Positions 6,073 to 34,857 of a stretch of DNA of 64,000 bases are shown here, in pieces. The notes below the pieces were generated by a model that was given only the letters and a program-made list of their open reading frames with translations, was not told the origin of the DNA and searched no databases. The stretch's first letter is position 1, and each line of letters starts with the position of its first letter. Origin of the DNA: Amoebophrya sp. A120 (lineage: Eukaryota; Protista; Dinoflagellata); the NCBI GenBank assembly GCA_905178155.1, contig CAJINV010000006.1:2830658-2894657 (forward strand), given 5' to 3'. The position numbers were made by a program, and so were the translations under genes.

Positions 6073-9000
6073 ATGGAGTTTGAGTTCCAGCAAGCCCGGC
6101 GAAGATCCTCATCTTCTACTGGGAGAGGACAAGAAAACCAACGAGACCTCCCGGATGAAGATCGTGAACAACATCGAAACCAGCAAGACAACTTCGGCGC
6201 AGGAGGAGGAGCTAGAAGTTCTTCCCGGCAAATAAACAAAAGTCCCAAAAAAAGGCGGAAAGAACACGATAGAGTGAAAGACCCCGCCATGTCGTCCACT
6301 GCTCGAAAGTACTATGCTAGAAGTACAGAATATCGTACGAAAAAACTGTTTCACTGTAAGGATTTTGCAGGTTTTGCATCACAAGTTTGTTTACACATGG
6401 CGCAAAAATTTGTCATGCGCACTTCCCAAGGGAAAACACCCTTAAAAATCCAATGCCTTGCATGTGTAGCAAGACAAATAGTTTTGTGTTCCATTCCATG
6501 CATCACAAGTTCAATCAGTGAAACAGTTTTCTCTTGCGATACGGAACCCATGCAGCAGGTGGACGTCGAGTCAGACGAGGACTTATCCTGTGCAAAAGCA
6601 TCGTACTCGTATTGCAATCACGCCTTACAAATCTTTCTCTTAAGGTAAATCCCCATTACAAATTTTATTTCTCATGCTGAGGAAATTTGTATATGCATTT
6701 ATACGAGCACGATACTTTTACTTTTGCAGTTCATAGGACTTCTACGGTCACAACTTCTCCCGTGCGGCGATACACGCTGCTAGTAGTTTTGGGGACAACA
6801 GTAATAGCTCATCTTATCAACAACAACAGCACAACCTGTCACAGCACGATTTTCGCCATCACCAGAAGCAGCTCCGCCGGGCGCAAACCGCCGGGCCGCG
6901 GCGGCCGGTGCATCAAAATATCAAAAGGAAAAATCCCCCCTCGTCCCCATATCGAAAAGGAAATCTGTGATGCTGGATTTGCGTACACAAATCAGATTTG
7001 TCTTGCAGTAGAGGACTGCAGGCAGATGCAAAGCCTGGAGAGGGGTCTGGTGGTGTAGGCGCCTGGCATGGTAGACGGCTGTCCTTTAGTCCTTACAGCA
7101 TTACAGATCGCCTGCGTAGCGTGGCAGAGAGCCTGGCTTTGCCTTCTCGCAAGACAGACAGGCTTTGTGGCCACAAATCTGCATCACAAATTTTCAAAAG
7201 GATGCCTTTTCAACATGGGGAGGGGGGATTATTCCTTGCTATACAAAATCCTCCGCCCCCACAGTTTCCTCCAGTCCCCGCACCCCCGGAATTGAACCCG
7301 AGAAACCGACTATGCATTGCAAATATGTGGGGGTATGGCAGGATGTAAACTTGTGATGCTGCATTTGCATACTTAAAAAAGTCTGTATTGCATGAACAGC
7401 AATAGAGGTTCACATTTTGCCGCGGCGAGAGGGTATTTCTCATGCGGCATAGGCGTCAGGAAGCCCTCGCAAAATCTGTGATGCTAGGGAATGCATCACA
7501 GACGTCAGGAATCATGCAAAACATGCTTGACAAACCTTGCACCCTTCCAGACGTCCAGAGATATTTGCATTGGATACCGACCCGCGAGACCGAATTTCTC
7601 CAGTTCGCAAGACTACCGGGCAAAGTTAAATTCCAGGTCGAACAGTAATTCTGGGGGAGGGGGAGGAAATAGTGAAAACAGAAGGAGAAGTATGCAAGGA
7701 AAAATAAACTGTGTAAGTGTATTGAATCTGTGATGCAAAAAATGCAAAGCAGTTACACTTGTCATGCCGGCCGACACCCATGAAGTCCTCTTTTCATGTG
7801 TGTTAGTGTTTTCACGTCCTAGCATTGCATGACAGGCTTTCATCTCTCTCGTGCAGAGCAAATTTGTATATGTTGGCACCGCAAGAGACCTACACCAACA
7901 CAGTTTTTTCCCTGGATAAGAAGTTCTCGTAGAAGCAGTCAGAATAATTATCACGTCTGGGACGACGGTAGGCACTGGACAGAAAATGACACGGATCCGG
8001 GTGGAGAAATAAAGGATCACGGTACGAACGGGATAAACAATGCTTCAAATAACGGCAGTAACGGTGGCGGCACAAACAACAACACAACAAATGGTGGAGC
8101 AGCAGCAGCTGCTGCAACTGGCGATCTTCACCAACAAAAGCAGAATCACCAAAATGGCAGCAATAACGGCAGTTCGGATAAAGACAACTCCAACCCTGTA
8201 TCTGGTGGCAATGATCCTCCAGATAACAACTCTTCCACCGCGATATCAAATGTAAAAATGTCTGGGTCTGGAATCTTGTGATGCTAAAATGTGCATGGTG
8301 AAAACGCTTCCGAATGCAGTTCGGCATGACAACTTCCCAAAACGCTTTCTCATAGGAAATCCGCATGAGAAGCTGCGTTTTTGCATTACAAAAGAGGCTG
8401 CGACTTTTCTTGTTTATGCAATACAGATTTTCTAGGTATGGAAAGCTAGCATTACAAGTTCCAACCTTCCAGACCCAGACACTTTTACAATCCATACGCG
8501 AAAGAAGGCGGTTCGCAAACCGGATCGCAGCCGGTCCCCTTGTATCAAATGTAAATATGTCTGGGTCTGGAAACTTGAGATGTAAGTCAGTCAATACCAG
8601 ACGCACTGTAATGCGCCGCCAAGCATGACAAGTTGCTTCGCGCTTCTGTGCTGCGTACTCACTCCGCATGAGAAACTGCGTTTTTGCATGACAGGTAAGC
8701 GGAGCTCTTCGCGGCCACGCAATACGGAGTTCAGAGACATGCCAGACTAGCATGACAAATCTCGCAATTTCCCAGACATCCAGGGATATTTGCACTTGAT
8801 ACCTTGGATGAGAGAACAGGAACGCGGGAAAGTGAGTCAGCAGCAGGAACAACTACACAGCAGCAGCCTATCAAAGTGAAAAAATACCCCACCCCATATT
8901 CAAAAGACAATTTGTGTTGCTGGATTTGCGCACACAAATGAGCTTTGTATTGCGCCAAGAGCTTGTCGGCATATTCTAAAGTCCATTTGGGTACTACGCA

Positions 9001-12000
9001 TCCGGCTAGCAGCGGAGCATGAGAAACAAGTCTGAAATAGGCGGAAACGCATGACAGACTCGCTGCGCAATGCGTCACATGGGAGTCGTTTGCTTTGTAC
9101 GCAAGACAAAGCTGATTTGTGGTCACAAATCAGCATCACAAATTCCCTTTTCGATATAAGGAGGGGGAGTTTTTCCTTACGATACAGCCGCCGCAAAGGC
9201 CCCAATCTTCCAAACTGTTCCGGTTCCTCCCCAATTTTAGCCGGCCAGGTTCCGCGAAAGTAAACCCCGCGCTAGAGGTATCGTGAGAACAAAGTGTTAC
9301 AGTTACACATTGTGTTCTTGCAGGAGCCGCAAGACAGACAGCTTTTGCCATGCAAGAAATGCTTGCGAACTTCATTTCGTATTCGTACGTGTTTTCCCTT
9401 GGGATCTCTGCATTGCAAGGTTTCTCTGCCACACAGAGAATAAGTATTTGTGTTGCTGAAGTTACAACAAATGTGTAACTGTAACACTTTTTTCTTGTGA
9501 TAAGAGGGGGTGGAACTACGAGTGAACGGTACGAATCTGCAGCAAAAGGGGGGCAGTAGTAGCTCCACCGCGAAAGGTGGATCACGTGGTACTTCTAGCG
9601 GGGTGAATGGACGAAAGGTGATCGATCTCACCACAGACGATGATGAAAACGGAAAAGAAGTCGAGGACGTCGTTGACCTGGGGGAGGATTTGATATCAAC
9701 AGCAAATTTCGACGGCCAGTACCAGTACAGATACAAACTCAACAAATTGTGCTTCTGTAAATGACAAAAGTTATCGTTATCTCCATGGAGCATGACTGCA
9801 ACCGGCATGCTTTAGGTCGACGTTGGGGAAATTTGTGATGCATTTATTTTTTACGTGAACAAGAACCACAACGTGTGCGGTAAATGTAAATTTGTATTGC
9901 ATAGGACGAGGAGGAGGACGAGGATGATATCATTTGTAAAAACGTCCTCACCCCATAGTTGTCGTGCAAATCTGCATGCTCAAAATATTTCTCATGCGGA
10001 AGCGGAACCTCATGACACGCATTTTCTAGTCGTGGTTTGTGATTTGTAATGCTGCAATCAGCACAATAGGCTAGATCTGTGATGCTTCTCCACAAGCTAA
10101 ACAGGATTACACTACGAGGCCAAACTTGTCATGCGCAACAGCCAAGCCTTGTGGATTTGTCTAGCAGATTTCCCATCTTGACTCTGGTGTGGGGACGTTT
10201 TTACAAATGATAGATGACCCGTCAAGATTAACTTCCCGCAAAGCGAGTAGCAAAGACAAAGATCCGAAATTCGCTTTCCGGAAAGCGGAATCGAGAATAT
10301 GCATTGCAAATATGTCTGGGTCTGGAAGAATGCGCGATTTGTCATGCTAGTCTGGCATGACTCTGCACTTTGTATTGCGTGGCCGCGAAGAGCTCCTTCT
10401 CCCTGTCATGCAAAAACGCCGTTTCTCATGCGGAATACGCAACTCAGAACCAACATGAAAAAAACTTGTCATGCTTGGCAGCGCATTGCAGTGAGCTGAC
10501 TATTCCCTTCCCTGCGTCGCAAGTTTCCAGACCCAGACATATTTGCAATGCACAGAGAATGGATTTGGACGATATCCTCCGCGGGGAGGAGAAGCGGAAA
10601 AAGCGAGATGCGTTTATCAAACGCAAATTATCGATCATCTGCGTCGTCGGGAAAATAAAAAATGCACACGAATTCTTCGATCCTGCTGAGCTTCGCATAA
10701 GATGAATATGCGGCTGTCTGTACGGCAGGAGAAAGCATGACAAGTTTATTTCTAATATTGCGAATTCAACCGTAAGAATACTATTAAATTTCGTGTGACA
10801 ATAAAGAACTGTCTTTCAAGCGCCAATCATGATGCCCTTGATCAGCAATACAGATCTCTGCCGCATGCGGAAATTTATTCGCATGACAAATCTAGACTAG
10901 ACCCGGATGTATTTGCATTTTTGCATAGCCTTGAAGATGGTACAGCGGGGGATCATATGGATTGCAAATATGTCTGGGTCTGGATGGATGCGAACTTGTG
11001 ATGCTACCTTTGGACTCTACATAAAACCTGTCTTGCATGAACAGCAAAAGAGGTGCAATTTGTGCTACGCGGAGAGGGCATTTCTCATGCGGTATGAACA
11101 TCAGAAGGCCCCCGCACCAGAATCTCTGATGCTAGGGTCAATGCATCACAGACCTCATGGGTCATGGAAAATCTGCATGACAAACTTCTGCATTCTTCCA
11201 GAGGACCCAGACATATTTACAATCCATAGATCAGGGAAGATGTAGAAGAAGAAATGGATGCGGACAGGACGGACGGGGTGGAAGGTATATGTACCTGCTG
11301 CTTCATTTTTTGTCATGCACAGAGCTGCATGAATAGCTGAATGCGGGAAACGAATTCTGCATGACAGATTTATCAATGCAAAAAAAAGAACTACAGACAT
11401 CGCCGAGCTGCACCGTGGCGGGACGTTAGAGTTCTTATCCAAGAAAAAAACTGTGTGAGTGTAGGTGTCATGGGGTGACAGCATGAGAAACTTGTTCTAC
11501 ATGACACAGAATCCTGTCATGCACAGCTAGCAACTGAAAACACGTATGAAAAGAGAGCATGATGGGTGGCCAGCATGACAAGTGTAACTGTGTAGCGCGC
11601 TTTGCATGACAGACTTACACTTACACATTTTTTTTCTTGCATAGTTCTCCAACGTGACCGACAAATTAGAAGGCGAAAGGACTCGGTATGGCCTGCTCAA
11701 GCGTGACAATCTCAAACGGTGCGAATAGAATCTGGATTTTGTCATCTTGCATGATGAGCATGACAGACTCACACAGCTGCGTTCCACTTTCTGCAATACA
11801 TCAAATTTCGACAGATAATTCTACTGCGGTTTGGGACCACTCCGAAACTTGTCATGCGCATCAATCCTGTGCGAGTACTCTAGATCATGCAGTTCTTGCA
11901 TCACAGATTCCCATATTCTATGGTAACCGATTTGAGATTGTAACACCTGAGCAGGTTACACGCGGTCGGGTTTGGATATCAATGCGATTATGATGCGGTC

Positions 12001-15000
12001 AAAACGGGTACCAAATGCAAATATGTCTGGGTCTGGAAGGTTGCTGAGGTTTGTGATGCTGTGTCTGCTTGACACAGAAGGTGTGCCATGCAAGGCCATG
12101 CAAGGTTTTGAGACGGTTTCCCAATGCCTAATCCGCATGACAAAAACCTTCTGTCGGCGACAGGAAAAGGAGGTCCTTTTGCTGTCCAAGCATGACATAT
12201 TTTTGTGTGATCTAAGTATGTATCACAAGTTCGCATCCTTTGCCTTTCAGACGCAGACACTTTTGCACTCGATAACGGGGATCGCAGAACGATCTAACCG
12301 CGGACTCAGTCACCGCGCTCGGCCGGTCGGATCTGGCCGGGGTAATGGAGGATAAGAAGAAAGTGGACATTGTGCCGTTGCAGGACGTGGATCCAGATGC
12401 GGTCGCGGCAAGGTAGTAAATCAGTACATATTTACTTTCTTCACCGATCAATATCAGGTTTTTCTTTTTTCTTGGCAGTGCTGGTCCATGCATGACAAGC
12501 GGCGCAGCCGCAGGTGTAGTAAGTAGCTAGTTCCTTCCCTAACTGTGCAATACAAAATTTTAGGTGGCATTTCCGTCGCTTCTGCTTCCACTTTGTGACC
12601 AAGGTGAAGATATCCACTGCAAACATGTCTGGGTCTAGAAGGGTTGGCATTTTGCATGACGCGTGAGGTTTGTGATGCTGGTGCTAGCATCACAGATTTT
12701 TTGACAGCTTCGTTTTTGCTAATTACGCATGAGAAATGCCCTCGCCGCATGCCAAGAACAGGACTCCTCTTGCTGCTCATGCAACACAGATGTTTTTAGA
12801 ATCCGCAGACAGCACTACAAGTTCCACTGTTCCAGACCCAGACATATTTGCAGTTCATAGCAGAGGGAATTCGCCGGTCTGGACAATCTAGCGGAGGTTT
12901 CGAATGATGAGCTTTATCCTGTGCAAAAGCATCTTCGCATGCAAACTTTGCATCAAAGACTGCTTGACAAATTCTGCTTTGGAATTTCTTGTCCAGCATG
13001 ACAACTTTCTAGGAAAATGAATTTGTCATGCGTGTAGTAAGGCACGCGCACCACGCAGGATGCTTTTGCCGTGCATAAAATGCTATCGCAACTGATGTTC
13101 ATGGGCGATGATGGCGGGCGCGGGGAGGATGTTGGGCCACAATACAACGAAGTAGCCAATCACTCCCACTGGACCTACAGAAGGAACTTCAACAGGTATG
13201 ATGTCATTGGAGAAAGGACGTTCTACTTGCAGAAGTATTTATTTGCGCATGGCAAAATCTTTTCTGTCGCTGTGAGCAGCATGAGAAACTCATAAATTAC
13301 CAAATACAACCAGGTTCCTCCTCCTCGTCATTATCGCTTCCCTGGTCATTGTCGGTCTAGAAGCGGACTTTGTCGTCCGAAACCCCGATAAGAAGACCAT
13401 CGAGCACCTGTACATGTATTTTCTGATGGAGCTCGTGTGTTTTTTCATCTTCTGCTATGACAAAGCACAACTCCCGCCCCACTCATTTGTCTTGCATTTG
13501 TAGCAACAGGAGAAACCATCTCAAAACTGCAGCGCTTGCATGACAAATCTGCTCCTGCTTCCAGAACTTGCCATGCACACGTGGCCAAAAGGCTCAGACA
13601 GGATTTGGCACTTTTGCATGACAAATGGGGCTGATGAGGGGTTGTGTACTCTCATATCTGCTTCGAAGCGATTTCCCGGTTTTCCATCCTCGGCCTGTGC
13701 TACTTTGCGGACTTTAAGTGGGCGACGGTTGCGCTGATGCTGAATGCCTTAGACGTGTACCATTTCATATTTATTGGGTACTTTGGGGGGTTTATCAAAT
13801 GTAAAAATGTCTGGGTCTGGAAGAGTCATGCTGTTTTTGCATGACACAGAAGGTCTGGCATTAGAGGTCTAGCATCACAGGTTTCGAAAAGCTTCCGCAA
13901 TGCCGAATCCGCATGACAAATCCCCTATTTTGCTGACCGAAAGTGGGCAGCTTTTGCTACGTATGCATGAGAGACTTTTCTGTGTTCTGAAATACGCATT
14001 ACAAGTTGCATGACAGGTTCGTTTTAAAGCACTTCGTCTGTCAGCATTTGCACTTCGTCTGACAAAAGCACTTCGTTGTGTAAAGCACTTCGTCGAGGAC
14101 GTAAAATCCAAGCTCTTCGTCAAAAGAAAAACAAAAAACTCATGTAACTTATAGGGGCAGATACTTCAACAGTTTAGCAGTGTGCGGGGGGGTGACTCAT
14201 GAGGTCCCCCCCCACCCGCTGTGCCCATATCAAAAAACACACAGGGAAACTCGTTTTTTCTTTTCTTTCGTACAGCAAGGGGATAGCATGGGTCGTAAGT
14301 CGTTTAAGGGGGAAAAAGATGCCTAAGGACTGCAGTAGAAAGAGGTAATTTTGAGATAGAGATTACAAAGTAGACGATATAGAAACATTAGTAAAACTGT
14401 AGTGAAGAGTAAAGTGGTGGTTTCGATTTTTTCTTTTTTCTCGCTTGTATACATATGTAGACACTAAGTAATGAAGTAAGAAAGAAAAAAGAACAGATAT
14501 GGGCGCAGAAGTGGATCAGGAGGACCAGGGAGGGCAGGTGAAGGTGGGACTACGAGCAAGAATTTGGAACGAGAGCTTGCAGAACGACGCCGAGCTAGAG
14601 GATGCGCTGTGCCGACACCTGGAAGAAAAACGAGACATCGGGGACCTGCTCTGTGTGTGCAAGTGGTGCTACCGGGTAAACATGGCGAGGGAGGTCACGC
14701 ACAAGCACGCAAAAACGAAGCACAACAGCCACCAGCTAACCTGCCCGGAAAGAGATCGAGATGGAGACGCAGGCACGACTTCGGATAAAAAGGTACTGGC
14801 AGAAAATGTTTTTAGAGTGGTAAGTGTAGCAAGCACAACAGAGCCACTAACTACAACGAAAAACACGAAGTCAAAAATTATGGAGACTGACATTTTTTGT
14901 GACGAAGTGAAGCCGCGCATGGTGGACATAGACTGGCTGAACAAGCCAAAAAGAGACCAAATGATTGCCCCACACGGGAACAAGGGAGTGTTCGCGTGTG

Positions 15001-18000
15001 GGCTCTGCCAGGTCTGTAATGCTGACTCCTGCGATTTTATTGACAGGCATACGCACACCTGTGTGCGTGAGTCGGCAAATTCCCGTGCAGCCTTAGCAGA
15101 GGGAAGAGCCCGCACACAATGCAGGCGCTGCAGCGCCCATGTTGCCTGTATGCGATCCCATATTTTGGCGCATGAGGCCCTAGATAGGTATAGCTATCTT
15201 AGCTCGAGTAAGCACTACGAGCTAGGAACGCTAGCATGGGACCAAAAAGTAGCGCTTACAAATTGCATTCTTGATGAGCCACTATGGGGGCAGGCGGTAT
15301 CCTCGTCGATGAATGTTCAGTCACTAAGAACAAAAAACGTCGACAGCTACATCTTGAAATATGTGGAAGACATTGAGCCGCATTTTCTGGGGCTGGATGA
15401 AACCAACCTTGACTCGATAGATAAGTCATGGCTGATTCACCAGCTTATTGCCCTGGGGTATCACATTATCTTCTGCCCACGGAAGCACGAGGGGGGTGAT
15501 GCAAAAAAGAAGAGAAAAAGCGGGTCATCCATTTTGGCAGTTAGATCTAGTGTAAGGCTAGTGAAAATACTAGAAGTGGACGACGTCGATGGGTGCGAGA
15601 TTATTCATGTCTTGGTGGAAATGAACAGCGTTGTATTTGAAGTCAAAAAGCTTTACGCCAAGCATGCAAAACTAGACGCAACACACCTAGGGATAGGAGC
15701 GGGGATTATTATTGGGGACCTGAATGCAAGGCACTTGAACTGGGACTACAAAAACAACCCAAACGGAACAACGCTGACAAAATGGCTAGAAGGGGAAGAG
15801 GGTAGGGGCTTCTGTTGCGCTAATGTGAAAGGGCAGGCAACGAGGGTACATGGTGAATGCGCAACAGCGCCAGACGTGATGGTTTTCGGCAAGGAGACTT
15901 TTGAAAAACCAAGGTTCGTAACGTACTTGCCATACAACTTTGACGCAATGGAAACGGAGACTAGCGATGGAAAACAAGCAACCCAAATCCTTGAAGGGGG
16001 AAAAGGAATAGCAGAAGAGAATGATGCGTGCTCAGAAGAACACCTGCGGAAGAAGAGAAAGACAAACATTGGAGCCGTTGACGCAGATACTAGTCAAGAG
16101 CAGAATAGTATTAGCCCAGACGAGGCTGAACTAGAATGGGAAGGGGTTTTTGAGGTAAACAAGGAAAGAGCAGATGAACGTGCGTGCTACGTGCGAATCT
16201 CCAGTGAAGATGTAGCGGGGGTTGTTAAGAGCGGCGGTCTAATAGTTGACGGCGTCGCAGAAGGGGAGAGCCTATGGAGCTGGGGCCTGGAGAATTGCAA
16301 GTTTTCAGAACAGCTTTCTGATCACTGCATGGTGGAGCTCCGCCTGAGCATCAAAGGAGCGGTGGTTGCCTTGCCAGAAGTGGCAAGCATTTTTGTGCCG
16401 GAAGTAGACGAAGAAAGACACGCAATGCCAGCGGAGCTGGAGCAAGAAGTAGGTGGGGAATATGGGGATGATGATCGGGATGAGCCGGGGGGGGGAGGGA
16501 GCGACTGCAACTACACCAGCAAGCTTTTGAAGTTCAAGTTTGAAAACGGAATACCAGTGAAGGAACAAACATGGGTAACGGCGTACAATCGGGATCTTCG
16601 TGATAGACTTGCAGACCACCCCCTGATGCGGAAGAACTGGCAGAAGCGGAAAGTAGGGCTGATTCAAAACGATCTGAAGCTGGTAAAGGAAGTAATGCTA
16701 GAGGTAGCAAAAGAGCATCTTCCCTGCTCGCGGGGAAGGAAGGCTACAGATGCTACTAGTGATGTAAAGGGAACACAAAAGCGGGCACGAAAGAAACCAA
16801 AAAAGGACGAGATAGGGCGGGGAAGGGATTCAGATGCAGAATTGGACCACCTACCACCAAAGGAAAGGTGGGAACACATCAACCAGAAAATAAGAAGAAA
16901 GAAAATTTGGACCACCGGGGGTTTTCCCTCGAAGCTGGTCAAGCATGACAAAGCGGCCATCTACTTCAAGAGGGCAACTGGAGAAGATATCACGGAAAAA
17001 GGAAACCAGAGCGCTTTGCTGTGTCCACCGCTTACCCTGAAGGAGATAGAAAGACGAACGAACGAGGCAGCTATGAAAGAGATAAAGAAGCGGAAAATAA
17101 CAGTAGAGCCACTTCCGGGCGAAGCAGTTGACGACCACGACGAAATAGTGAACTACTTCGCGGCCCAATACAAAGGGAGACCGCAACAGGTCTACAGCAA
17201 GAACGGCTTTGAAGTGCCAGATGAGAGCGAGTGGAAAAAGAAAACCTTCAAAGATACGCGATTGAAGTCGCGCCAGAAAGCGAAGGAGGGGCAATTTTGG
17301 GAGTTGACCAGGACAGAGTTTGCGGCGGCTATCAGGAAGCTGGAATGTAACAAGAGTCCGGGGTGTGATGGGGTTACGCATGAGCTGGTCAAGGCTTTGG
17401 ATGGGGTAGGATGGGAGTGCTTATTTAGGTGCTACTACGTGTTAGTCAAGCACAACGCATTTCCGGAAATAGGGCGGGAGATTATCCTAGCACCTGTAGG
17501 CAAGACAGAAGAGCAGGCTTTCTCAGAAAGTTTGTTTCGACCTGTAAGCTTGTTATCAGTATATGCTAAGGTGTGGGAACCGTAGCCATTTTGGCTCAAG
17601 ATCCCCTACCGGTGAGTACCCCGCCGTAGGGGTAGGCCTTCAATGTTGGTACACACCCTCAGTGCCCTTTGGAAATAGTTGATTTAGATTTTTTGTGTAA
17701 GATAAAACGAAACTACCGATCATAAAGATGTTCCACAAATAAGATAGAAAAGTCGAAAGGTTCTGACACTGAAAGCCCGAAAACAATTGCGAAGATCGAA
17801 CTGTGCTCCCTTTTTTACACTCTTTTACGTACGCCCTTTTTTTTTGACCGCTCAATAGATTTACCTCTCTCTGACGCAATATACAATTCCGAAACGCCGT
17901 TTAGGTTTTTGACTTGATTCGCACAACATCAACACACGTTGCACATTTCGGAACTCTTTAGTTGACCTCACACGCATTACAAATTCGAAGTACTCCACAT

Positions 18001-21000
18001 AGACACCATGGCAAAAGGAGACCCAAAAAACCATGCGCCTCGCGGCAGCTCGCCAGCCGGATCCGCCAAAGGGAAGCAGACCAGTGACAAGGGCAAAGGG
18101 AAGAAGAAGGGGAAAGGCAAGGCCACCACCACTTCTTCCACCTCGACAAAAGACTACGACCGCCTGAAACTGGACGTGGCGCAGCTGAAAGCAAATCACA
18201 TTTTGATGGTGAAGGGTTTGGAAGGCATCGAGACCTTCTCGGATTGGAAAGAGCGCAAGCTCGAGGAGGAGCAGGGCCTCGAAATTCCGAACATCACGAA
18301 AGCGAAAACGCAGAACTCGCCCGGCCCGCTACGCGTCAAAGCTGCCGCCAGCAGTTCCAGCTCTAGCAACATGAAAAAACCCGCCGTCACTATTGAAGAC
18401 CCAATCACGCACATGGAGGCGGGGGCACGCTACGCGCTTTGGAAGGACGGCATTTTGAAAAAATGCGCTTCGGCCGCCGGAAATGCATGGGTTCACACGG
18501 GCGAACCTCTCCGATACCTGGAAGAACAGGACGACGGCAAGATGAAGCTGGTCGAGCACAAGACGATGGTGTATGGAGACAGCGACAAGGAGGAAAGCTA
18601 CCGCCTCGCCCAGGAGATGAAGGCTTGTTTTTCCGCAATCAAGCCAGACCACGTGCGGACGATCGCCGTCCACAAGAGCGGGTGGGTGGAGATCCTGTGC
18701 AAAGGCAATACCAAGGTCTTCGACCTGAACTGCTTAGTGCAATCGAGTTCCGACAACGTAACCAAGATGTACCTGCAGGACCTGCAGGTGAAGGAGTACA
18801 TCGTGCGCAGCGCGAAGGACTTCGAAAGGTACATGCGAAAATTGCAGAACCGCGCGGACAAGGACCTGCAAAAAGCCAGCGAAGCGGAAACGCAGGGCGG
18901 GCAGGAGAAAGAACAACAGAACGAGAACAAAGCGGGCGATGAGGAAATGGACGATGATGATGAACAGAGCCCCTCGGGTTCCCCGGCGGGCGACGAGGAA
19001 ATGTTGGAGGAGATGGAAGATGGGCAGGTGCGCGTGAAACGGCGCAAGAAGAGCAAGGACAAGTCGAAAAAGGACAAGAACAACAAGGGGCTGGTCAAGA
19101 AGGATACCGACGCCAAGGACGGAAAAAAGGCGGCTCGCATCGAGAAGCGGGTCGTGCTTGGTGGCGCGGCGGTAGCGAAAGGCATCACGGGACGCTCCCC
19201 AGGGGGCATCTCTGGTGCTGGCGGGCAGTAAACCTTCATCTTCATCACAGAAACTAGAAAGTAATAAACCAGGGCGAGTACGTGGACGACCTTTCCTTCT
19301 TGCAACCATGATTTGAACCGAAAACAAGCAGTAACTTTTTCCAACGACCGGAGAACAACGACGAGCAATCTTTACAACCAATTAAGAAAACACTCTTTCC
19401 CCGAAGGCGCGCGGGCGAAAGACAAAAAGCGGGGCGCCGTGTGTGCTCTGCTTTGCATGCAGTTGTGCATTTGGCACATTAAGATTTGTGTACGACAAAC
19501 TTGAAGAAGCAGTTTATAGCAGTCATCGAAGATATCTCCACTACCGGAAATCCGGTAGTTTCTCCCGTTTGCGGGAAACCAAAAAAGGAAGACTAAGGGC
19601 TAACAGGGGTATCATTGCGGCACACGTGATGCCCTCGCAGTAAAGCAGTTTTTTCCGACTTGTGTGTCGCTGGGGACGGATCGCCAAACCGAACCCGGAA
19701 TTGCAGGCAGAAGCATTTGTTATCAGCACTAATTTTTCACTCACGCAGCTGAGGAGTCAACCTCAAGAAAAAATCTGATTGAAGATTGGCGTTTTTTGCA
19801 CAGAAGATTTGAAGAAGCAGTACGTATTTGGGAGGAGCTCACCTCCAGAAAAAAGCCCGGGAGTTTTTGTGTGTTCGCAGACCAGCATCGGGAATTTTAC
19901 CGGACACAAACAGCTGCCAAGACCAGAGCGGAATTATGGCTCAAGGAGGCAGTAGCGCCTCGCGCAGGAGCAGTAGCATGCAGAATAGTTTTAGGCCGTC
20001 GGGCACCTCTCCACACGCAGTTGCACCGCAGTCAGCTCCCACGCCGGGGGCGTTCCCTGGGGTAGGCAGCAGTGCAGGCCGACGCGGCGCAGCCGGATCG
20101 GCAAGCACCGGCTGGGGCGAGCCCGGCCGAGACTGGGGAAGCAATGCGGCAAAACGCACTTTGCGCTTTGGAACTTTCAACGTCCTAACGCTAGGACGCC
20201 GAGAAGAACAGCGGGATAGATGGCCCGTAGAACTGCTGACGTTGATAGAAGATGCAAAGCGACAGGGACTAGACATCCTGCTTTTACAAGAAACAAGAAT
20301 TCGGGCATGGCTTACGGGGGAGCAGTGGCCAGGCGGTTACAGGGCGTACGGGGGCGGCGCGTCCCCAAACGCCGCCGGCGCTGCGATAGGGGGCACCGTT
20401 ATTCTAGTTCGGGCGGGAGTCCGGGTGGCAGACGTAAGCGTGGAGCAGCAGGAAAGAATGATGCGGGTCAGCATCAAGTGCCAGTACGGAAAAATGCTGC
20501 ATATCCTCAGCGTCTACGCCCCGACAAACACCGCCGACCCAGAGAAGAAACAGAAATATTACGAAATGCTAGACAGGGAGCTGGGGGCCTTCAGCAAGCA
20601 CGACATAGTAGTACTCGGGGGGGACCACAATTGTGAACTTGGTAATCCGGAAATAGAACTGATCAATGCGGGACTCCCATACGCCGTAGGGAAATGCGGC
20701 CTGACTAGCGACTTTGTGGTCGAGTCAGACAACAAGCAGCGGCTGCACGAGCTAGCAGCAGCGCGGCAGCTTGTTGACCTCTCCAGCTTGCACAAAAAAC
20801 CGTGGCGGGAGCGGTTCACTTTCACCGGAAAGTGGACAAGCGAAGAAAGACGACAAAGGGAATACGACCGGTTCCTCGTATCCCACCGAGATCGCGGCCT
20901 CTTTCAAAAACTAAAAGTGATCAAGGGCACACTCACACACAGCGACCACCGCATGGTGGTGATGGAGATGAAACTTGGAGCAATAAAAAAGCCTTCCTCT

Positions 21001-24000
21001 AGAAAAATTCCCCCGCAAATAATTCGAAGCAAGGAAAAGGCAGAACAGGCCAGCAAGCGGCTGGCGGTCAAGTACACGCCCGAGGTGCTTGAACAAATCG
21101 AAAACGGTCCAACAAGTGCAGGGGCTTGGTGGACGGAGTTCGAGAAAGATCTGGGGGCGACTCTGGAGAAACTTCGCAAGCTCGCGCCTGCGAGTGGGCC
21201 GCAAAAGCCATGGATATCGGAAGATACTTGGAACAAAATAGAGGAACGAAGGAAGGCCAAGGCTAGCGGCGCCGGCAAAGTTACCAAGCTGACAAGGGAG
21301 ATCAACAAACTAGTAAAAGCCGACAAAGCCGCATGGGTACAGAACAAAATAGAAACGCTGAAACAGGCCGACGCGTGCGGAAATACAAAAGTAGTTTTCG
21401 ACACAGTGCGGCAACTGGCGGGTAGAGGCCGGAAGCGGCCGCAGGAGTTGCCAGGCCCGGCCAAGGTCTGGACAGACTTCTGGGGCGACATTTTCGGCAA
21501 GCCGCGACCACAGCCGCCGGACGAAGTCCGGCAAACAAAAACCTGGAAGCGGTGCGAGAGAGAGATAGAGAGAAACGAGCCCGGGCCAACGTGGTGCGAA
21601 GGGCTGGACGCGGTCCCGTCGCGGGATGAAGTGGCCGCAGCGCTCAAAGAGCTGAAAGCGGGCAGGGCCTTCGCCGGCCCGATCCCGGCGGAATTCGCAA
21701 AAGAATGCGACACAGTCAAGTCGGTGCTGGCGGCCTTGGTGCGTCGGATCTTCGCGGGGGAAAAAATCCCGGAAGAGTGGGGCGAGGCGGTGGTCGCCAT
21801 GCTCCACAAGGACGGCGTGCAGGCCAACCCAGCAAACTGGCGCCCGATCGCGCTGATCACACTCGGCGAAAAATTGCTCGGTCTCGTGATTCTTCGCAGG
21901 ATCGAAGCAGACGCAGGCAAAAAGCTGGACCCGCGACAAAAAGGGTGCCGGCGCGGGCTGTCGTGCAGACATGCAGTTTTCGAACTGCTGCGCGACGTGG
22001 AGCGGTCTAACAAAGAAGGGAGGCGGGCGCTTTACGCGTTCATAGACTTCCAGAAAGCCTTCGACTCGCTGTCGTGGGATGTAATGTTTACCGTGCTCCG
22101 CCTGCAGGGCGTCCCAGAAAACATCTGCAGAATAATCTACAACATGTACGAACAAAACGCAAAAGTAACTATACGACTAGGCGAAGGCAAACACGCCCCG
22201 ACTTTCCGACAGCGGTCGGGAATTCGACAGGGGTCAGCCCTCTCCCCACTCCTCTTCGCCATATGCGTGGACTGGGCTCTCGCACAGTTCATTGCAACAA
22301 TGGTGGAAGAGCAGAAGTGGACACGGGAGCAGGCAGAGGCCCAGGCGTTGGCGTGGCTCGGCTACGTCGACGACCTGGTCGTGAAGGACAGCAACGCCAA
22401 AGACCTGGAGTTCGCACTCCAGGAGCTGTCTAGCGCGTGTCGCTTTATCGGGTTGGAGTTGAACACCAAAAAGACGAAGGTCCTGGCGGTGAACCCAGAA
22501 GTGGAGGAAAGAAAAAACCCGAGCGCAAAAATGGAGCGATGCCAGCACGACGGAGACTGGGGGTGGATGATAGAATGGAGCGGCAAGGACTGGAACAACC
22601 AGTGGAAAGAAGAAGCAGGGCGACTAAAGATGGCAGGCCTGGGGGACCTGGCTCCCACCCACCTGGTGGTGTGGGACACGCCGTCAAGAGGGGTAACAGC
22701 AGTAACACTGAAACAGAGCGGCTGGGCACTAACAAACGAGGGAGAAAGCATCAGGTTGATGCGGCTAGGGCAGATTCGGCATGTCATTGCCGATAAAAAC
22801 GCGCACGAATGCCCGAAGTGCGGAGACATCCTCCCGGATGCCACCGCACTTCACTTCCACACAGCCACCGGCTTTTGCAGACCTAACAAAACGATGCAAG
22901 AACTGCGCACGCTGCGGATCGGGCGGCAAGTAGAACAGAAGAACAAACAAGCACAAAAGCCCACAGCAGTGCAGGAGGGGAAACCGGTGCGCCACCTGGG
23001 CAAAGCCATCGAACAGGTGGCAAGCTTCAAGTACCTCGGTACGGAGATAGCCCTTGACGGAAGTACAGACGCAGAAACAACAAGACGCTGCGCGATAGCT
23101 CTGGGGGTAGTGCAGCAGCTCTCGCCGATATGGCGGGACAAAACAATCCCTCTTTACCTGAAGTCCGACCTGTTTCGATCCCTGTCTCTATCAGTCGCCA
23201 TGTATAACTCGGAATGCTGGGCGATATCTAGTGCGGCAGCGACGCAGCTGCGGCGCTACCAAGATAGTGCGCTGCGGCATGTGCTAGGCGGGCACTACAA
23301 AAACCAGGAGAAGAACCGCCTGCAGCTGTGCACCGATCTCGGTGTGCAGCCCCTAGAAGTAGAAGTTGCGACCAGACGTCTAGGTTGGGTCGCCCACACG
23401 TGTAGAGGTGACGAGGCGGAGGGTTCCGTCTCGCGCATAGAGAAGGAACTTTTTTGCAAATCGATATGGGGTCGCCAGCTAGAAGACGACTTTTACATGT
23501 TCGGGCTCACAATGCAAACGTTAAAAGAAACGAAGCCAACAGCAGTAGCATTACGAGCGACACTAGCAAAACGGAAACCGGTCAAGCCGATAAAGAAGCA
23601 GAGAGGAGCAGTAGCGGGACGCCCAAAAACGGAAAAAAGAACAGCAATGGAGGAGGAAAGACAGCGGAGATTGGAACAACAACGACGTGAGACTGATGAA
23701 GCAAACAAAAAATTGCTATCGCAAATAAACGGGAAGGTGTGGGAGAAACAGTCCAGGTCTAAGTACAATTTTTCTGTCTTGGCAGACAGTGGCGAGCGCA
23801 TAAGTTTCCGGGTAACAAGCTTCTTCTTCTGTGAAAACGCCGGGATGGAAGAAGCAACAGTACTGGGCCACACTTTCCAACAGAACAACGCAACGAAAGC
23901 CTGGACTGCAGCCAATCCCATCGTGTGAGGAAATGAGGGGTCTCCCAGGACCAAGAGATAACAAAGCACTGCACATCCATGATAGAACCCAACGCGGAAC

Positions 24001-27000
24001 TAACACGAAAAGCCACGGATTTTAGCAGTAGTCAGTCAGTCAGTCAAGGTGTGGGAAGCTATACAAGATAGAAGATTGTGCTTATGGTTAGAGGGCTACC
24101 AATGGAATGGAAAGAGCAGAATTGAAAATAGCAGCCCCAAGCTCCCGCTGTACTCCCTAGCATACAGAAAAAACTTTTGCAAAGAGTTTGGGGCTATTTC
24201 AATTCTCGAGTATCTGTTTTCAGAAGAAGGACTGAAAACAAAAGGCATGAGAAAATTTCTGCTGCTAAATGATAACGAAGCAGGTTTTGATGTGGTTTCA
24301 CATGAGAAATTGCTGGAGACAATGCATGAGTTAGAAGTGCCGGAGGACATAGCGGCAGCCACAGTGCAGTGGCTGAGTTACCGAACAGTTAGAATAAAAA
24401 CAGGGAACAGGTACTGGTATCTATCTCCGGGGATGCCGCAAGGCAGCCCCTACTCAGGGGGCTGCTTTAATGTACACAACACGCCACTAATTCAAACTAT
24501 GGCGCAGCTGAATGAAGACGGCACACAGACGCAGTTTTCGGATGACAACAGCCAATGCGGAACCGGTGACATGGAAGCAGTGACAAAACTCAAAAAGGAT
24601 CTGGTGCGAACGGGCAGAAAGAAGTTCATATTTTTTGAAGAGACAAAGTCTGAAGCTGTTTTCTATGATGTTGGGGTGGATAAGAAGGTAGAAGTGAGCG
24701 AAGCAAGTAGGTCCTTGGGGTTTTTCTATGATGGCACATGGGATTTCTCCTCCCACTATGAAATCATGCGAAAGAAGATGATCCAGGAGAACACAAGCGT
24801 AGCACGATTGAAAAACTTAAGACTCACCGCAAAAATCGACACCTATGTCTCGATAGTATACAGCGCGATACTATCGAATAGCATCCCGTTTTTTCACTAT
24901 TTCAAAAAGCAGAACAAGCTGCAGATCAAGAAAGACACTGCGAAATTCCTGAAGGGGCATGCTATGCTACCCAAACAAACGCCAAACACGATTTTGCATC
25001 ATTGTGCAGGAATTCCGGACATTCACACGCTCTTCGTAGTAGAAAACTTGATGCTCTTCTACAAAGGCGCGCAGTTGAAGCTATGGCCACGACAAAAAGA
25101 GCCATGCGAAGAGGTCAAGGCTATGTTCAGGCAGACAGATAGCAGCGACCCAGCAAAATTCTTACTAGGCATGGACAAAAAGCATGCAACGTGGACAGAT
25201 ACCATTCGGCACATGGCAAAAACGGGCTTTCCTGATGTGCGTAGTCATTTTGGTCATGAGAGACTGTATATCGGCAAGATTTTTTGGCGGGGCGTAAATC
25301 TAGATGCGAAGTCCATGGACAGGGTTGGGACGGATATGGGCCTGGGGAAGCTGTCAGGTAAGCAGGGAAAAGAGCTGGACGAGGCACGGGGAAAGGTAGC
25401 ACGGGCGCACAACGCACTAGTGCGGGGGCTAATACGGAAGTCCCAGGGGAATCTTGTCACGGCAACGGATGGACTGGTGGACAAAGAAAGAAATTTAGGA
25501 GTGGGGGCGGGGGCAAGTTGGTGGTGGGAGCCGGTTGGTGATGATGGGACGGGGAAGCTTCGGGCAGAAGTGGGGGAGGACGAGTTACCAGATCCGATTT
25601 GGATCTCAGGAGCATATATACACTCACCGCTGAGTGATATTCCAACGGATTCTTTTGATGCAGAGTGCATAGGGCTAATGCAGCAGCTTGAAAAGATAGA
25701 ACGCCAAATCCTAACACACCCGCACTTGAGTAAAATGCTGAGGAACTTCTATTTTTTCTTAGATAGCAACTCCATAGTGCAGGCACTGGAGTGCTACAAC
25801 GACGGTAGTAATGAGATGATCCACAAAATTATGAAGCAGATGGAAAAACTAAAAGACGCATGCATTGGGGAGGGGCCGAACGAGGAGGAAGAGGTATGGT
25901 TTCACTTCCGTTGGACACCCGGACACGCGGGGCAGCTGGCGAACGATTGTGCGGACCTCCTAACGAATATCTACAAAGAAATGTGGAAAGACGGGCACCA
26001 GGACTTTTCGGACACAGCGGCGCGGCCGATCTACAAAAAAATGATCACTGCGCCGATCCTGCGGCGGCTTTTCCTGAAAAGGATCCTCGCGCAGAACATG
26101 GAAAATTGCCAATCCCCCTCGGAGTACTTGCGCGAGCGCGCGAAGTCTTTGGGGGGGTTCCGGCCGCCCGTGGGTGTCTTCCCGATACGCGAGGCGGAGT
26201 TGGTCTACTTCTGGGTGTGGTTGGGAATCGCCCCCCAGCCACACTTGGGGTGTGAGGAAATCGTTTACGAGGGAGGGAAAATGAAACAAAGGTGCAAAAT
26301 GTGCAACAGGCTGTGCGACTGCGCAGTTGATCACGCCCTGTTTGAGTGCAGGAATGTAGAGGCGCCGCGCGCGCGCCATTTTGGCTTTAAGTTTTGCGCG
26401 CCCACCTTGGGGAGGGAACTGCTTCAAAATCCCAGAAAGATCTTGAAGTTCATAATAGACGAAGCGACAAATTTGACACATGAATATTTCCGAGACAGAA
26501 TAGGTAGCTGCATCGAGCAAGTCGGGACGAAAATGGAAAAGGAAGTAAAAAAGCATGAAAAGCTACCAAATTCATATGTGAAGGCATGCAGCATGAGCAA
26601 GGCAAGAGTTTTTACAGATGAGATACCACTGAAATACTTACACTGACACTAGAGCAATCTCATGAATCACAAAAACAAAAACTCACAGGTTTAAATATAC
26701 GAAAAACATGTTTTTTTTCTTCTCCTTCATTAAGCAGTACATGTAAAAAGCAACGGAATATAACGAAAATCAAGCTGGCGCACGGAGCCGAGGAGAAAAC
26801 AGAACGCGGGAAAATAGAAGTTGCCAGGTACTAACTATGAGCTTTTTGATAAATAGAAATATGAAAAATACATAAATACTTAGGAAGAGTAGATGTTGAA
26901 GAACGTGCAGGAAGGAATTCACGCGCTCGACCACACTAAGCGGCTATCTTCTCTTAGAAAGTAGGGCGGCAGGCTCCATTTTTCTGACACTTTGTTCGCG

Positions 27001-30000
27001 CGCCCAGCACGCCTTGTCCCCCTGCTACGAGGCGTTTTGGGCTTCGACGTTAGACCGAAGCGTACAGATATTGAATCAAAATTCTGTTTCTTGTACGGGC
27101 AGCCTGGTTCACACCTGACTCCAGTCCCAAGAGAGAAAGGTAGTCGGGACGGCGGGTGGCAGGCTTCGTTTACCTGGTACTTTGTTCGAGCGCCCTGCAC
27201 GCCTGGTCCCGCTGCTACGAGGCTTTTTCAGCTACGACTTTAGACTGAAAAGTACAGACTTTGGCGAAAAAGTCTGTCTCTTGTGTGGGCCGCCTGGTTC
27301 GCGCCTGTATCTAGTTCCAAGTGTGAAAGGTAGTCGGAACGGAAGATCCGACGCCGACCTGCTTTCTCCCCAGGGTGGGGTGAAGGGAGGCCCGCGACAA
27401 CCTCAACGGCGAGAAGTACGTGCACGCAGCCCACGCAGCGCCGACGCTGGCGCCCCCAGCCTATCTCGAGCACGATGAGCACGGAAGACGCGACCGGGGC
27501 CTACCCGCCGCGCGCGAATCTCCCGCTACCACACGGGAGGGTCGCCGGCATGGACGACCGCCCAATTCGCCTGGTGCCCACAGAGCCCTGCAGGGCTGGG
27601 CGCGCCCTGGTACGCTCCTCTCGCGGCACAAGCTCCGGCGCCACCATGCCGCGCCGCGCGACGTAGCTGTCGGGGGCTTCTAACAGCTATCACGCGATCG
27701 AGTTACTGCTTCGGAAATCGAGGCCACAACAAAAGACAACGACACTGACAGTGCGAGACTCCCGCACTAATGTGATTTACTACTTATTTAAATATCATGC
27801 GTGAACACCTCTACTTCAGCATCAAAATGAAAATTGAAAATGAATGCAAAAATCTCCTCCAGGTCCCTAACAGACGAGCGCAGCCCGCATGAGAAAACAG
27901 TAACTGGCTTCCCCTTCGACAGTCAGATCTTGGCGACTTCGAGGCTTACGGCTGACACCCTAGAATAATTTGTACCAAACAGCCACGTAGCTTAAACTTG
28001 TACTTAGTAGGCATCGTCGTTGCTGAGTCCCCTGACGCAAAGAAGCAAGAAAATACTGTTTAAGACCTGGCGTCTCTGTTGACCCTTTCTCCTCGGCTTC
28101 GTTTACGCAAAACAGCAATCGCATCGCGCAGTCGTAAAAACTCGTAAGCCATCGCACTGCTTTCGTTCTTCGTGAGTTGTTCTTGTTTTCACTTGGAAGA
28201 AAAATCAAAAAACACAAGCAGGGACAGGCTGAGAAAAGGAATAGAGTGGTAGGAGTAGAAGTTCTACATACTTGCGCATAGACAGATAGAGGAGATGGAA
28301 AATGATGAGTAATGATGTCTACCTTGGTTGTTATTTGTCTCTCGACATGCTGTTAAAGTTAAATGATCTGAGTAGTACTAGTTGTATAATTTTCTCCCAG
28401 CTGTAAGTCGTGTTAAGAAAATTCATTTTAGTAATCACTGGAAATTGAATAAAACAAAACGAATAGCATCTTGGCGTCTTGTGCTTTTCTTCCGTTATAT
28501 TGCTTGCTGCTAGCAGAAGAGGATGAGGATGCAGAGGGGATGGAGAACTGGCAGGAACAATTGGTGAGAGCACGAAATGGAAATGCCAGCTCCAGCATCG
28601 ACATTGGATATAACCAGCGTGAAGGAAACGGAAACTGCAGCTGCGACGTATCAAATAAAGGTAGGGCCAAAGGCCACGGGAACGCCAAACATAGCCGCGC
28701 TCTTCTTCGTGAAACGCCCACCGCTACTGGCGCGGTGGATATAAAAGAAAAATCAAAAGAAAAATCACGAGAAAAAGAAAAATCAAAAGAAAAATCAAAA
28801 GAAAAATCAAAAGAAAATCAAAAGAAAACCAAAAAAAAATCAAAAGAAAATCCAAAGAAAATCCACGCGCTAGAAGCCTAGAAAAAAAAAAAAAAAATAC
28901 GCATTACAAGTTGCATTCTTCCAGACCCAGACATTTTTGCATTTGATAGGGTTGAAGATGGGCTACGTGATCCGGTTCATCCGGTTTTTCCAATCCCTAT
29001 CGTGAGAAAAAAGTGTTTCACTGTAAGGATTTTGCAAGTTTTGCATTACAAATTCGCTCTACCCATGCGAGGATCCGAAGGGAAAACACCGCTGAAAATC
29101 ACTTGTCTTGCATGTGTAGCAAGACAAACACTTCAGTGATGCATTTTCTGCATTACAGGTCTAGTACACGTGAAACAGTTTTTTCTTGCGATACTCCCGG
29201 GAGATGTTCTACTACTTTCCGCTACTGGACTATCCAAGAAAAAAACTGTGTTTAGTGTAACTCGGTGATGCCGAACATGCAACAGAGTTAGTACAGTTGT
29301 CATGCCGGATTATATCCATCAGAGCCCCCTCTCTGCATGCGTGATTTCACGTACTAGATGCGCATGCCAAGTTTTTTCTGTCATGCGACAGCACAAATGT
29401 GTGATGCTGCAGCTGCTCCCCCAACAGAGCTCCACTAATAAAACACAGTTTTTTTCTTGGATATGGATCGCAAGGCGAAAAAAACCTTCTTCATCCGGAA
29501 GTTATCCTGTGGAAAAACGTCCCCACCCCATAGTTGTCATGCAAATCCGCCATGACAGAAAGATTTGTAAATGCCCATCTCGTCCATGACAGGCATTTTC
29601 AATCGTGTTTTGGCATTTGTAATGCTGTGAACAGGATGAGAAAGTGGCTTTCTCATGCGGCTTCCCTTGCTAACCAGCACTATGCAGATGGAATCTTGTC
29701 ATGCGCAATTCCTAAAACTTGGAGACTTGTGTTGCAGATTTACCAACTTGACTATGGGGTGGGGACGTTTTTGCTCAGGATAGAAATCTAGCAAAATTCT
29801 GTCCACACTGGGGTGGTGCATGATGCTGATCCTGCTCTTCGTGAACGTGATGAGCATCTTTTATACGAGCATGATCAAAAAGGAGCACGAGGTAATGTAC
29901 ACAGCGATGAAGACGACGGGCTACATATGCACTGCAAATAAGTATCGTACTAGTACTAGAAATCGCATGACAAATTTTCTCAGCATGAGAAATGAAATGT

Positions 30001-34319: not shown

Positions 34320-34857
34320 GTGGTTTCACAATTGAGACATTATGACATTATTGTAGCTTACGCTTACCTATCAACTGGAAAAATGTCTGGGTCTGGAAGA
34401 ATTCATGTTTGTCATGCTTGTCTGGCATGACTCTTAAATCTGTCATGCACGTTACCCAAGAGCTTCGTTTTTCTGTGATGCAGAAGCGCAGTTTGTCATG
34501 CAGAATAGGCAACACCTAGGAGCTCAGAAACTTGTCATGCTGAGCCAGCATTTGTAGCCTTATCATGAGACGCCACCCAGCATCACAAGTTCCCAGACCC
34601 AGACACTTTTACATTTGATATTACCGTAGTACTACGGGAAGGACGAACCTGTAGAGGGCGCTCGTGGACGTTTCTAACTTTGACTAAATTCATCTTGAAA
34701 TAAAACACAACATCAGCAAGCTGCAAAAATAAGCAACGAAAGTTTATTCAGTATACCAAAGCACCAGAAGCTTTTTATCTCAACATTCTCTATCACGACA
34801 CACGACCGCAACCATGAGTATTCTTTGCCGTTTGTACAATTTTTCCCACCGATAAGG

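Follow-up and report, generated by a model that had tools for sequence, protein, structure and literature searches.

A LINE that begins with the dinoflagellate spliced leader in the genome of Amoebophrya sp. A120

The retrotransposons SLACS, CZAR, CRE1, and NeSL-1 encode a restriction-like endonuclease and insert into spliced leader (SL) RNA genes. In trypanosomatids, the L1Tc, ingi, NARTc, and SIDER retroposons share Pr77, an internal promoter that gives rise to unspliced transcripts with no SL (PMC1874656, PMC8190864). Relict copies of the dinoflagellate SL (DinoSL) on dinoflagellate retrogenes are well known (PMC6050394, PMC12014239), and the recycling of processed cDNA is cited from Slamovits & Keeling 2008 in PMC7789003, PMC6050394, and PMC12014239. 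In parasitic flatworms, SL fragments on loci of long interspersed nuclear elements (LINEs) and long terminal repeat (LTR) elements may reflect integrated trans-spliced retrotransposon RNAs (PMC12582326, PMC5832876). The genome of Amoebophrya sp. A120 is described as having DinoSL on 37.8% of its transcripts, introner-type non-canonical introns, and non-LTR elements (Farhat et al., PMC7789003); SL-headed LINEs are not mentioned in that paper, and we found no description of them in the literature on dinoflagellates or Amoebophrya. Here, we analyzed a 64-kb stretch of this genome (C6:2830658-2894657 of assembly G000, hereafter the window), in which one LINE, designated LINE B, is inserted into another, designated LINE A, and begins with the DinoSL.

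The first-pass annotation had placed a perfect SL directly behind the left target-site duplication (TSD) of LINE B, and our analysis confirmed it: the plus-strand sequence at 17580-17600, CCGTAGCCATTTTGGCTCAAG, matches the DinoSL at 21 of 21 bases and is encoded in the DNA from the first base of the element. It is the sole SL match in the window with up to three mismatches allowed (chance expectation, 0.01). The preceding base is an A, which fits position 1 (D) of the 22-nt DinoSL, and the full 22-nt leader may be present if this base is counted. The 12-nt sequence AAGGTGTGGGAA occurs at 17568-17579 and again at 24046-24057, the latter directly 3' of an (AGTC)n tail. A contig from the public run X4 passes from 17411-17579 straight into 24058 and onward with a single 12-mer, and so represents the empty target. 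This contig and the 12-bp TSD together fix both boundaries and make the SL the first base of the LINE B insertion; the empty target itself has no SL. The target is the open reading frame (ORF) of LINE A, whose endonuclease part lies upstream and whose RVT_1 domain lies downstream of the insertion, in agreement with the earlier proposal that the target was another LINE rather than an SL gene. The hairpin noticed at the same time was also recovered: the SL is followed by ATC and then by a 7-bp stem formed by CCCCTAC (17603-17609) and GTAGGGG (17626-17632). LINE B itself has neither a tandem nor a relict SL.

LINE B (17580-24045) is 6,466 bp long and intact, with an apurinic/apyrimidinic endonuclease (APE) and a reverse transcriptase (RT) domain. 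The endonuclease of ORF2 matches PF03372 (Exo_endo_phos; residues 115-353, E 6e-9) and lies N-terminal to the RT, which matches PF00078 (RVT_1; E 2e-26) and has R2 and L1 ORF2p as its closest solved structures. ORF1 has relatives of 24-45% identity in other LINE copies of the A120 genome; a search against 5.8 billion proteins gave no match, and one against representative proteins gave a single weak match (P0001, E 4e-10). The element has the hallmarks of a LINE, i.e., a 12-bp TSD, a simple-repeat tail, an empty site, and a 5'-truncated sister copy, and we classify it, on its domains and boundaries, as an APE-type non-LTR retrotransposon. The sister copy (C18:686843-690073) is 100% identical at the amino acid level and is truncated at residue 290 of ORF2. 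Given this identity and two intact ORFs, the family has moved recently.

We then scanned the whole assembly (115.5 Mb, 401 contigs) for the SL and read the surroundings of the sites in pieces of at most 300 nt. There were 51 exact and 12 one-mismatch sites (63 in total), compared to none for a reversed control pattern, and 32 of the 63 head repeat families with unrelated upstream flanks. The alpha/B family, with ATCC and a G/C hairpin after the SL, accounts for seven sites (the window, L004, L005, L021, L052, L053, and L039); beta and beta', with ACTTTGTCTTGTTGCC and GCTTTGCCTTGTTGCC after the SL, respectively, for 12; gamma and gamma' for four; delta, with GAGCCTAAC... after the SL, for seven; and LINE A-like elements for two (L019 and L047). 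The ORF-bearing relatives of LINE B behave alike: L033 starts with the last 14 nt of the SL and L036 with the last 8 nt, L034 has the same junction with only AG and genome-unique flank before it, and L039, a LINE with an internal deletion, retains the SL in full. L034 was considered as an unspliced master copy and rejected, because its upstream region is unique in the genome and hence flank. SL-headed elements lie in LINE ORFs, in introners, or in unique DNA. As an SL-independent sample, we picked 12 beta and delta copies by body similarity alone and read their 5' ends: eight carry 10-16 nt of the SL at the same junction, four are cut within the body, 3-17 nt from its start, and in none does element sequence other than the SL lie upstream. 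The first-pass annotation had asked whether full-length copies start with the SL or extend upstream without it. Copies of the second kind were not encountered in alpha/B, beta, or delta (0 of 12 in the beta/delta sample), where the SL junction is fixed and the SL often 5'-truncated; LINE A in the window keeps a leader without the SL. Tandem or relict SLs, the former likewise anticipated, occur in three copies of the delta and beta families (L050, L029, and L092). In alpha/B, beta, gamma, and delta, all copies that reach this far have the SL at an invariant junction, either in full or with its own 5' part missing, so that it now in effect forms the 5' terminus of these elements. The positions estimated for the 5' ends of four other ORF2 lineages fell in flanking host genes (e.g., a tubulin-like ORF) and do not bear on the SL at these ends. 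In the alpha copy L053 (G000 C15:1716789-1717089), the upstream flank ends in an alpha-head fragment, ATACCAACCCCTG, directly before the SL; this copy may be a nested or rearranged insertion.

Traces of the splicing itself come from the relatives of LINE A. The window copy of LINE A starts with a 169-nt leader that contains no SL, and parts of this leader recur in at least six other copies. L019 is homologous to LINE A precisely from the base behind the AG at 14179-14180 onward and has the SL where the leader would be; L019 ends in poly(A), and its introner resumes approximately 700 nt downstream. L047 carries its SL behind the following AG, the counterpart of 14243-14244 in the window. As judged from these junctions, the LINE A family comprises an unspliced form and two alternative trans-spliced forms, all of them retrotransposed.

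Repeated rounds have also left their mark. L050 reads SL-c-SL, L029 has an SL plus a 15-nt relict, and L092 has two 15-nt relicts in tandem, indicating that SL-bearing copies were transcribed from upstream, re-spliced, and retrotransposed again. The visible acceptors of re-splicing are an internal CCGTAG| (L029 and L092) and an AG in the flank (L050); none is the terminal AG of the SL. The reuse of that terminal AG as the next acceptor, as previously suggested, is compatible with these data and would leave no trace in the DNA. The gamma' copy L069 carries an ACGTAG variant of the SL, whereas its sister copy L018 has CCGTAG. The variant is also found in three loci with identical flanks, L066 (G000 C6:190537, minus), L067 (C6:201174, minus), and L074 (C223:2221), which read ACGTAGCCATTTTGGCTCAAG and then GTTGAGC. 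GT follows the SL in these loci, and pairing of GTTGAGC with the SL 3' end covers the donor site with a stem; all three are probably genuine SL RNA genes of a variant type. L031 (C11:2800777), with CCGTAG followed by GT, is a further candidate SL RNA gene. Other dinoflagellate-like metagenome contigs (L075, L076, L078, L082, and L085) have a decayed SL behind a full one; they represent the usual tandem relicts of genes rather than LINE heads.

A scan of metagenome contigs for the SL followed by RTCC retrieved two contigs of the whole-genome shotgun set JACKZZ01, which represents a second, related genome. One (L077; JACKZZ010003058.1, minus strand, from 6587 downward) carries the SL, a hairpin module of the LINE B type, and a LINE ORF2 with 41% identity over 1157 aa to the ORF2 of LINE B. 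The sequence upstream of this element aligns with C2:4414671-4416356 of G000 (89-92% identity), where the site is empty; the alignment breaks off where the SL begins, at 3 nt of possible microhomology. The other locus, L081, is an alpha copy including the SL and lies in a different repeat. The first 75 nt, i.e., the SL and a 54-nt hairpin head (17580-17654 in the window), are 96% identical between LINE B and L077; beyond them, the two elements hardly align, and no similarity between their ORF1 sequences is detectable. Strong constraint and the exchange of 5' heads between lineages are possible causes of this conservation. The 75-nt head of LINE B occurs once in G000 and is thus not a host small-RNA gene there.

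Several families encode, just downstream of the junction, a complement to the last 5-8 bases of the SL. In beta and gamma, the complement is G(C/T)CTTG..GCC, opposite SL bases 14-21 and two bases of the body; pairing holds in 98.6% of cells, and one pair of this stem is compensatory (G-C vs. A-U). The delta stem is GGCTC-AAG-GAGCC, and in alpha, GCTCAAGATCC pairs with GGATC..TGAGC; we found no compensatory pairs in the alpha-family hairpin, and the folding z-scores of most 101-nt heads are not significant. The complementarity lends modest support to the view that the RNA of these elements includes the SL as an integral component. The base after the SL alternates between A and G: A in alpha and G in L033 and L034, A in beta and G in beta', and A in gamma' and G in gamma. 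With G, the junction reads G|GT, G|GC, or G|GA and is similar to a donor site.

We read these data as follows, with a probability of roughly 0.7: the template of LINE B was an SL-bearing RNA that had been trans-spliced at an AG, and reverse transcription wrote the SL as the 5' terminus of the new copy. LINE transcripts, like mRNAs, would receive the SL by trans-splicing at an AG acceptor, and reverse transcription over the full length would leave it next to the TSD, at the very start of the new copy. The fact that approximately half of the genomic leader copies head mobile elements argues that these were copied from leader-bearing RNAs. In alpha/B, beta, and delta, renewed copies could arise through transcription from outside and renewed trans-splicing, or through an internal promoter; we infer that every generation of LINE B owes its SL to trans-splicing rather than to an internal start, and the AG that is used is inferred along with it. 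Mobilization from a trans-spliced RNA had been put forward by the first-pass annotation. Its claim of an SL at the 5' end of the template stands and recurs across families, and the trans-splicing itself is seen in the LINE A family. Several points weigh against our reading. No LINE B transcripts were found in run X4, the sole informative run, which has no depth beyond 17579. Of three raw RNA runs with the same species label (X7-X9), one has two partial reads and two have none. An unspliced alpha/B copy, which would show the acceptor AG, was not found in G000. An encoded SL is indistinguishable from a freshly added one unless transcripts of truncated-SL copies are at hand. Finally, the fixed junction and a head conserved at 96% as against 41% for ORF2 also fit an inherited, DNA-encoded head with a transcription start of its own.

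That last point leads to the rival that we take most seriously and still consider unlikely, in which the SL head is inherited as DNA, an internal promoter starts transcription at SL base 1, and the RNA mimics a trans-spliced mRNA. Possible parallels are Pr77 and the SL RNA gene of Ascaris, in which the SL sequence doubles as an intragenic promoter element. Such a promoter would be in keeping with the findings that the junction is fixed across diverged lineages, that the 75-nt head outlasts an ORF1 whose similarity is no longer detectable, that several families keep a complement to the SL 3' end downstream (the beta/gamma stem with its one compensatory pair included), and that no unspliced alpha/B copy has turned up. 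It does not account for the relatives of LINE A, in which the SL has been added at alternative AGs, or for the tandem and relict SLs, which betray upstream-initiated transcripts that were trans-spliced; it also sits poorly with the many copies whose SL is cut to 10-16 nt and with an SL variant that differs between the sisters L018 and L069. A captured SL RNA, exon and intron, joined to a LINE by template switching of the RT in the manner of U6/L1 chimeras or of the small-RNA heads of short interspersed nuclear elements, is far less probable. At 75 nt, the head is roughly as long as a small RNA, the 3' end of the SL forms a stem with what follows, as it does in the putative SL RNA genes (L066, L067, and L074; SL + GTTGAGC), and the bases after the SL make possible donor sites in some families (G|GC, G|GA, or G|GT). 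Against this, the head of LINE B is present once in the genome and no standalone gene exists, the sequence after the SL differs by family and in many begins with AT, AC, or CG, which are not donor sites, the junction to the body is constant rather than variable within a family, and only the exon is common to all families; the relatives of LINE A carry the 21-nt exon alone, joined at AGs.

The remaining explanations can be set aside. Site-specific insertion of a LINE into SL RNA genes, with the SL as target, has nothing but the adjacency of SL and LINE in its favor and is refuted by the SL lying inside the TSD and by the empty sites of LINE B and L077, which are free of the SL; moreover, the flanks are another LINE, introners, or unique DNA, and the endonuclease is of the APE type. 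A chance match or an assembly chimera is just as implausible, with 0.01 matches expected per window, 63 sites against none in the control, and the same architecture in an independent assembly (JACKZZ01). A one-off template switch, which the first-pass annotation had named as the alternative, is not borne out, since SL heads recur in several families and two genomes. Empty sites, recurrence, and site counts thus led us to reject insertion into SL genes, a one-off switch, and chance alike.

Beyond the template itself, we tentatively consider a wider scheme, which is possible and rather doubtful as a whole, in which these LINEs have no promoter and renew their 5' end themselves. They would lie mostly in sense orientation in introner introns, where read-through of the host gene would transcribe them. 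Trans-splicing at the AG that ends their encoded SL, whether whole or truncated, would then release a capped product, with the complement in the body presenting this acceptor, and the SL would stand in for a promoter and supply the 5' end as well.

The setting of the window copies is a nested one. LINE A (14012-28896) ends in poly(A), is flanked on both sides by the 20-bp duplication ATACGCATTACAAGTTGCAT, and lies within an introner element with inverted terminal repeats (13793-28948). The exon sequence flanking this introner is open on the plus strand and includes a stretch resembling a membrane segment; a host gene thus holds LINE A and LINE B within one of its introns, both in the sense direction. 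Run X4 also has a contig in which position 14794 of LINE A is followed by sequence from approximately 26691. This contig stems either from a spliced RNA of LINE A or from a copy at another locus that has lost its interior. Of the 32 oriented loci scanned, 8 have a left introner repeat with no partner 200-290 nt upstream of the SL. Introners house the SL elements L004, L005, L006, L008, L013, L018, L019, L021, and L081, and LINE A likewise; the insertion points are near the expected start of the right introner repeat, in either introner orientation. The window has 19 introner repeat matches (0 expected), with inverted repeats paired approximately 240 bp apart at 8252-8488, 9936-10204, 29511-29774, 34377-34612, and 56715-56981. 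The features of the nested locus are listed in Table 1.

Table 1. Features of the nested LINE A/LINE B locus (positions in the window)
Feature	Position	Strand	Remarks
Introner, left part	13793..14011	+	Inverted terminal repeat at ~13801; ends with the 20-bp duplication ATACGCATTACAAGTTGCAT
LINE A, 5' part	14012..17579	+	Leader without SL, 5' untranslated region (UTR), ORF with endonuclease; hosts LINE B
LINE A leader, 169 nt, without SL	14012..14180	+	
Leader AG	14179..14180	+	SL of L019 joined exactly after this AG
Second AG	14243..14244	+	SL of L047 joined exactly after the homologous AG
Left TSD copy, AAGGTGTGGGAA	17568..17579	+	Final A may belong to the SL instead (base 1 of 22)
LINE B 5' UTR	17580..18007	+	428 nt including the SL
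DinoSL	17580..17600	+	21/21 sequence match
Hairpin CCCCTAC...GTAGGGG	17603..17632	+	Directly after the SL; with the SL, part of the 75-nt 5' module
LINE B ORF1	18008..19231	+	407 aa, intact; no Pfam domain
LINE B ORF2	19828..23928	+	1366 aa, intact; APE-type endonuclease, RT, weak sub-threshold zinc-finger match
LINE B 3' tail, (AGTC)n	24027..24045	+	
Right TSD copy	24046..24057	+	Repeat of the 12-mer; empty-site contig
LINE A, 3' part	24058..28896	+	RT domain, long 3' region, poly(A)
Introner, right end	28897..28948	+	Second copy of the 20-bp duplication and right inverted repeat

An SL at the head of a LINE bears on the long-standing question of how these elements preserve or restore a working 5' end from one jump to the next, as it would give their RNA a defined, mRNA-like, capped 5' end irrespective of where transcription started. 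In practice, the SL marks the boundaries of full-length retroelements in Syndiniales genomes, and annotators should be aware that approximately half of the SL matches in this genome are transposon heads and not SL RNA genes or retrogenes. Copies in which the SL is truncated (e.g., L091, L093-L095, L097, and L100) lend themselves to asking whether a relict SL is reused as acceptor.

Compared to the known systems, LINE B shares with SLACS, CZAR, CRE1, and NeSL-1 the position of a LINE beside an SL sequence, and the transcripts of those elements may carry SL bases at the 5' end; unlike in those elements, the SL here travels with an APE-type element into unrelated targets. Like Pr77, the head of LINE B is a 5'-terminal module of approximately 75-77 nt conserved among otherwise diverged retroposons, from which promoter activity would follow here by analogy only; unlike Pr77, it contains the SL. 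It differs from U6/L1 chimeras in that the exon alone is shared by the families, the junction is fixed for each family, and the head of LINE B is unique. The dinoflagellate retrogenes are alike in having the SL encoded in the DNA at the 5' end of a retroposed copy and in acquiring tandem or truncated relicts through renewed trans-splicing; here, in contrast, it is the retrotransposon and its non-autonomous relatives whose own RNA is retroposed, entire families share one fixed SL junction, and the tail of LINE B is (AGTC)n rather than poly(A). The flatworm LTR and LINE loci are similar in that a partial SL is attached to LINE or LTR copies, reported there in a passing remark on discarded loci without analysis of boundaries, whereas the elements described here belong to the DinoSL system and offer a TSD with its empty site, the acceptor AGs in an unspliced relative, and SL heads that are nearly universal in some families.

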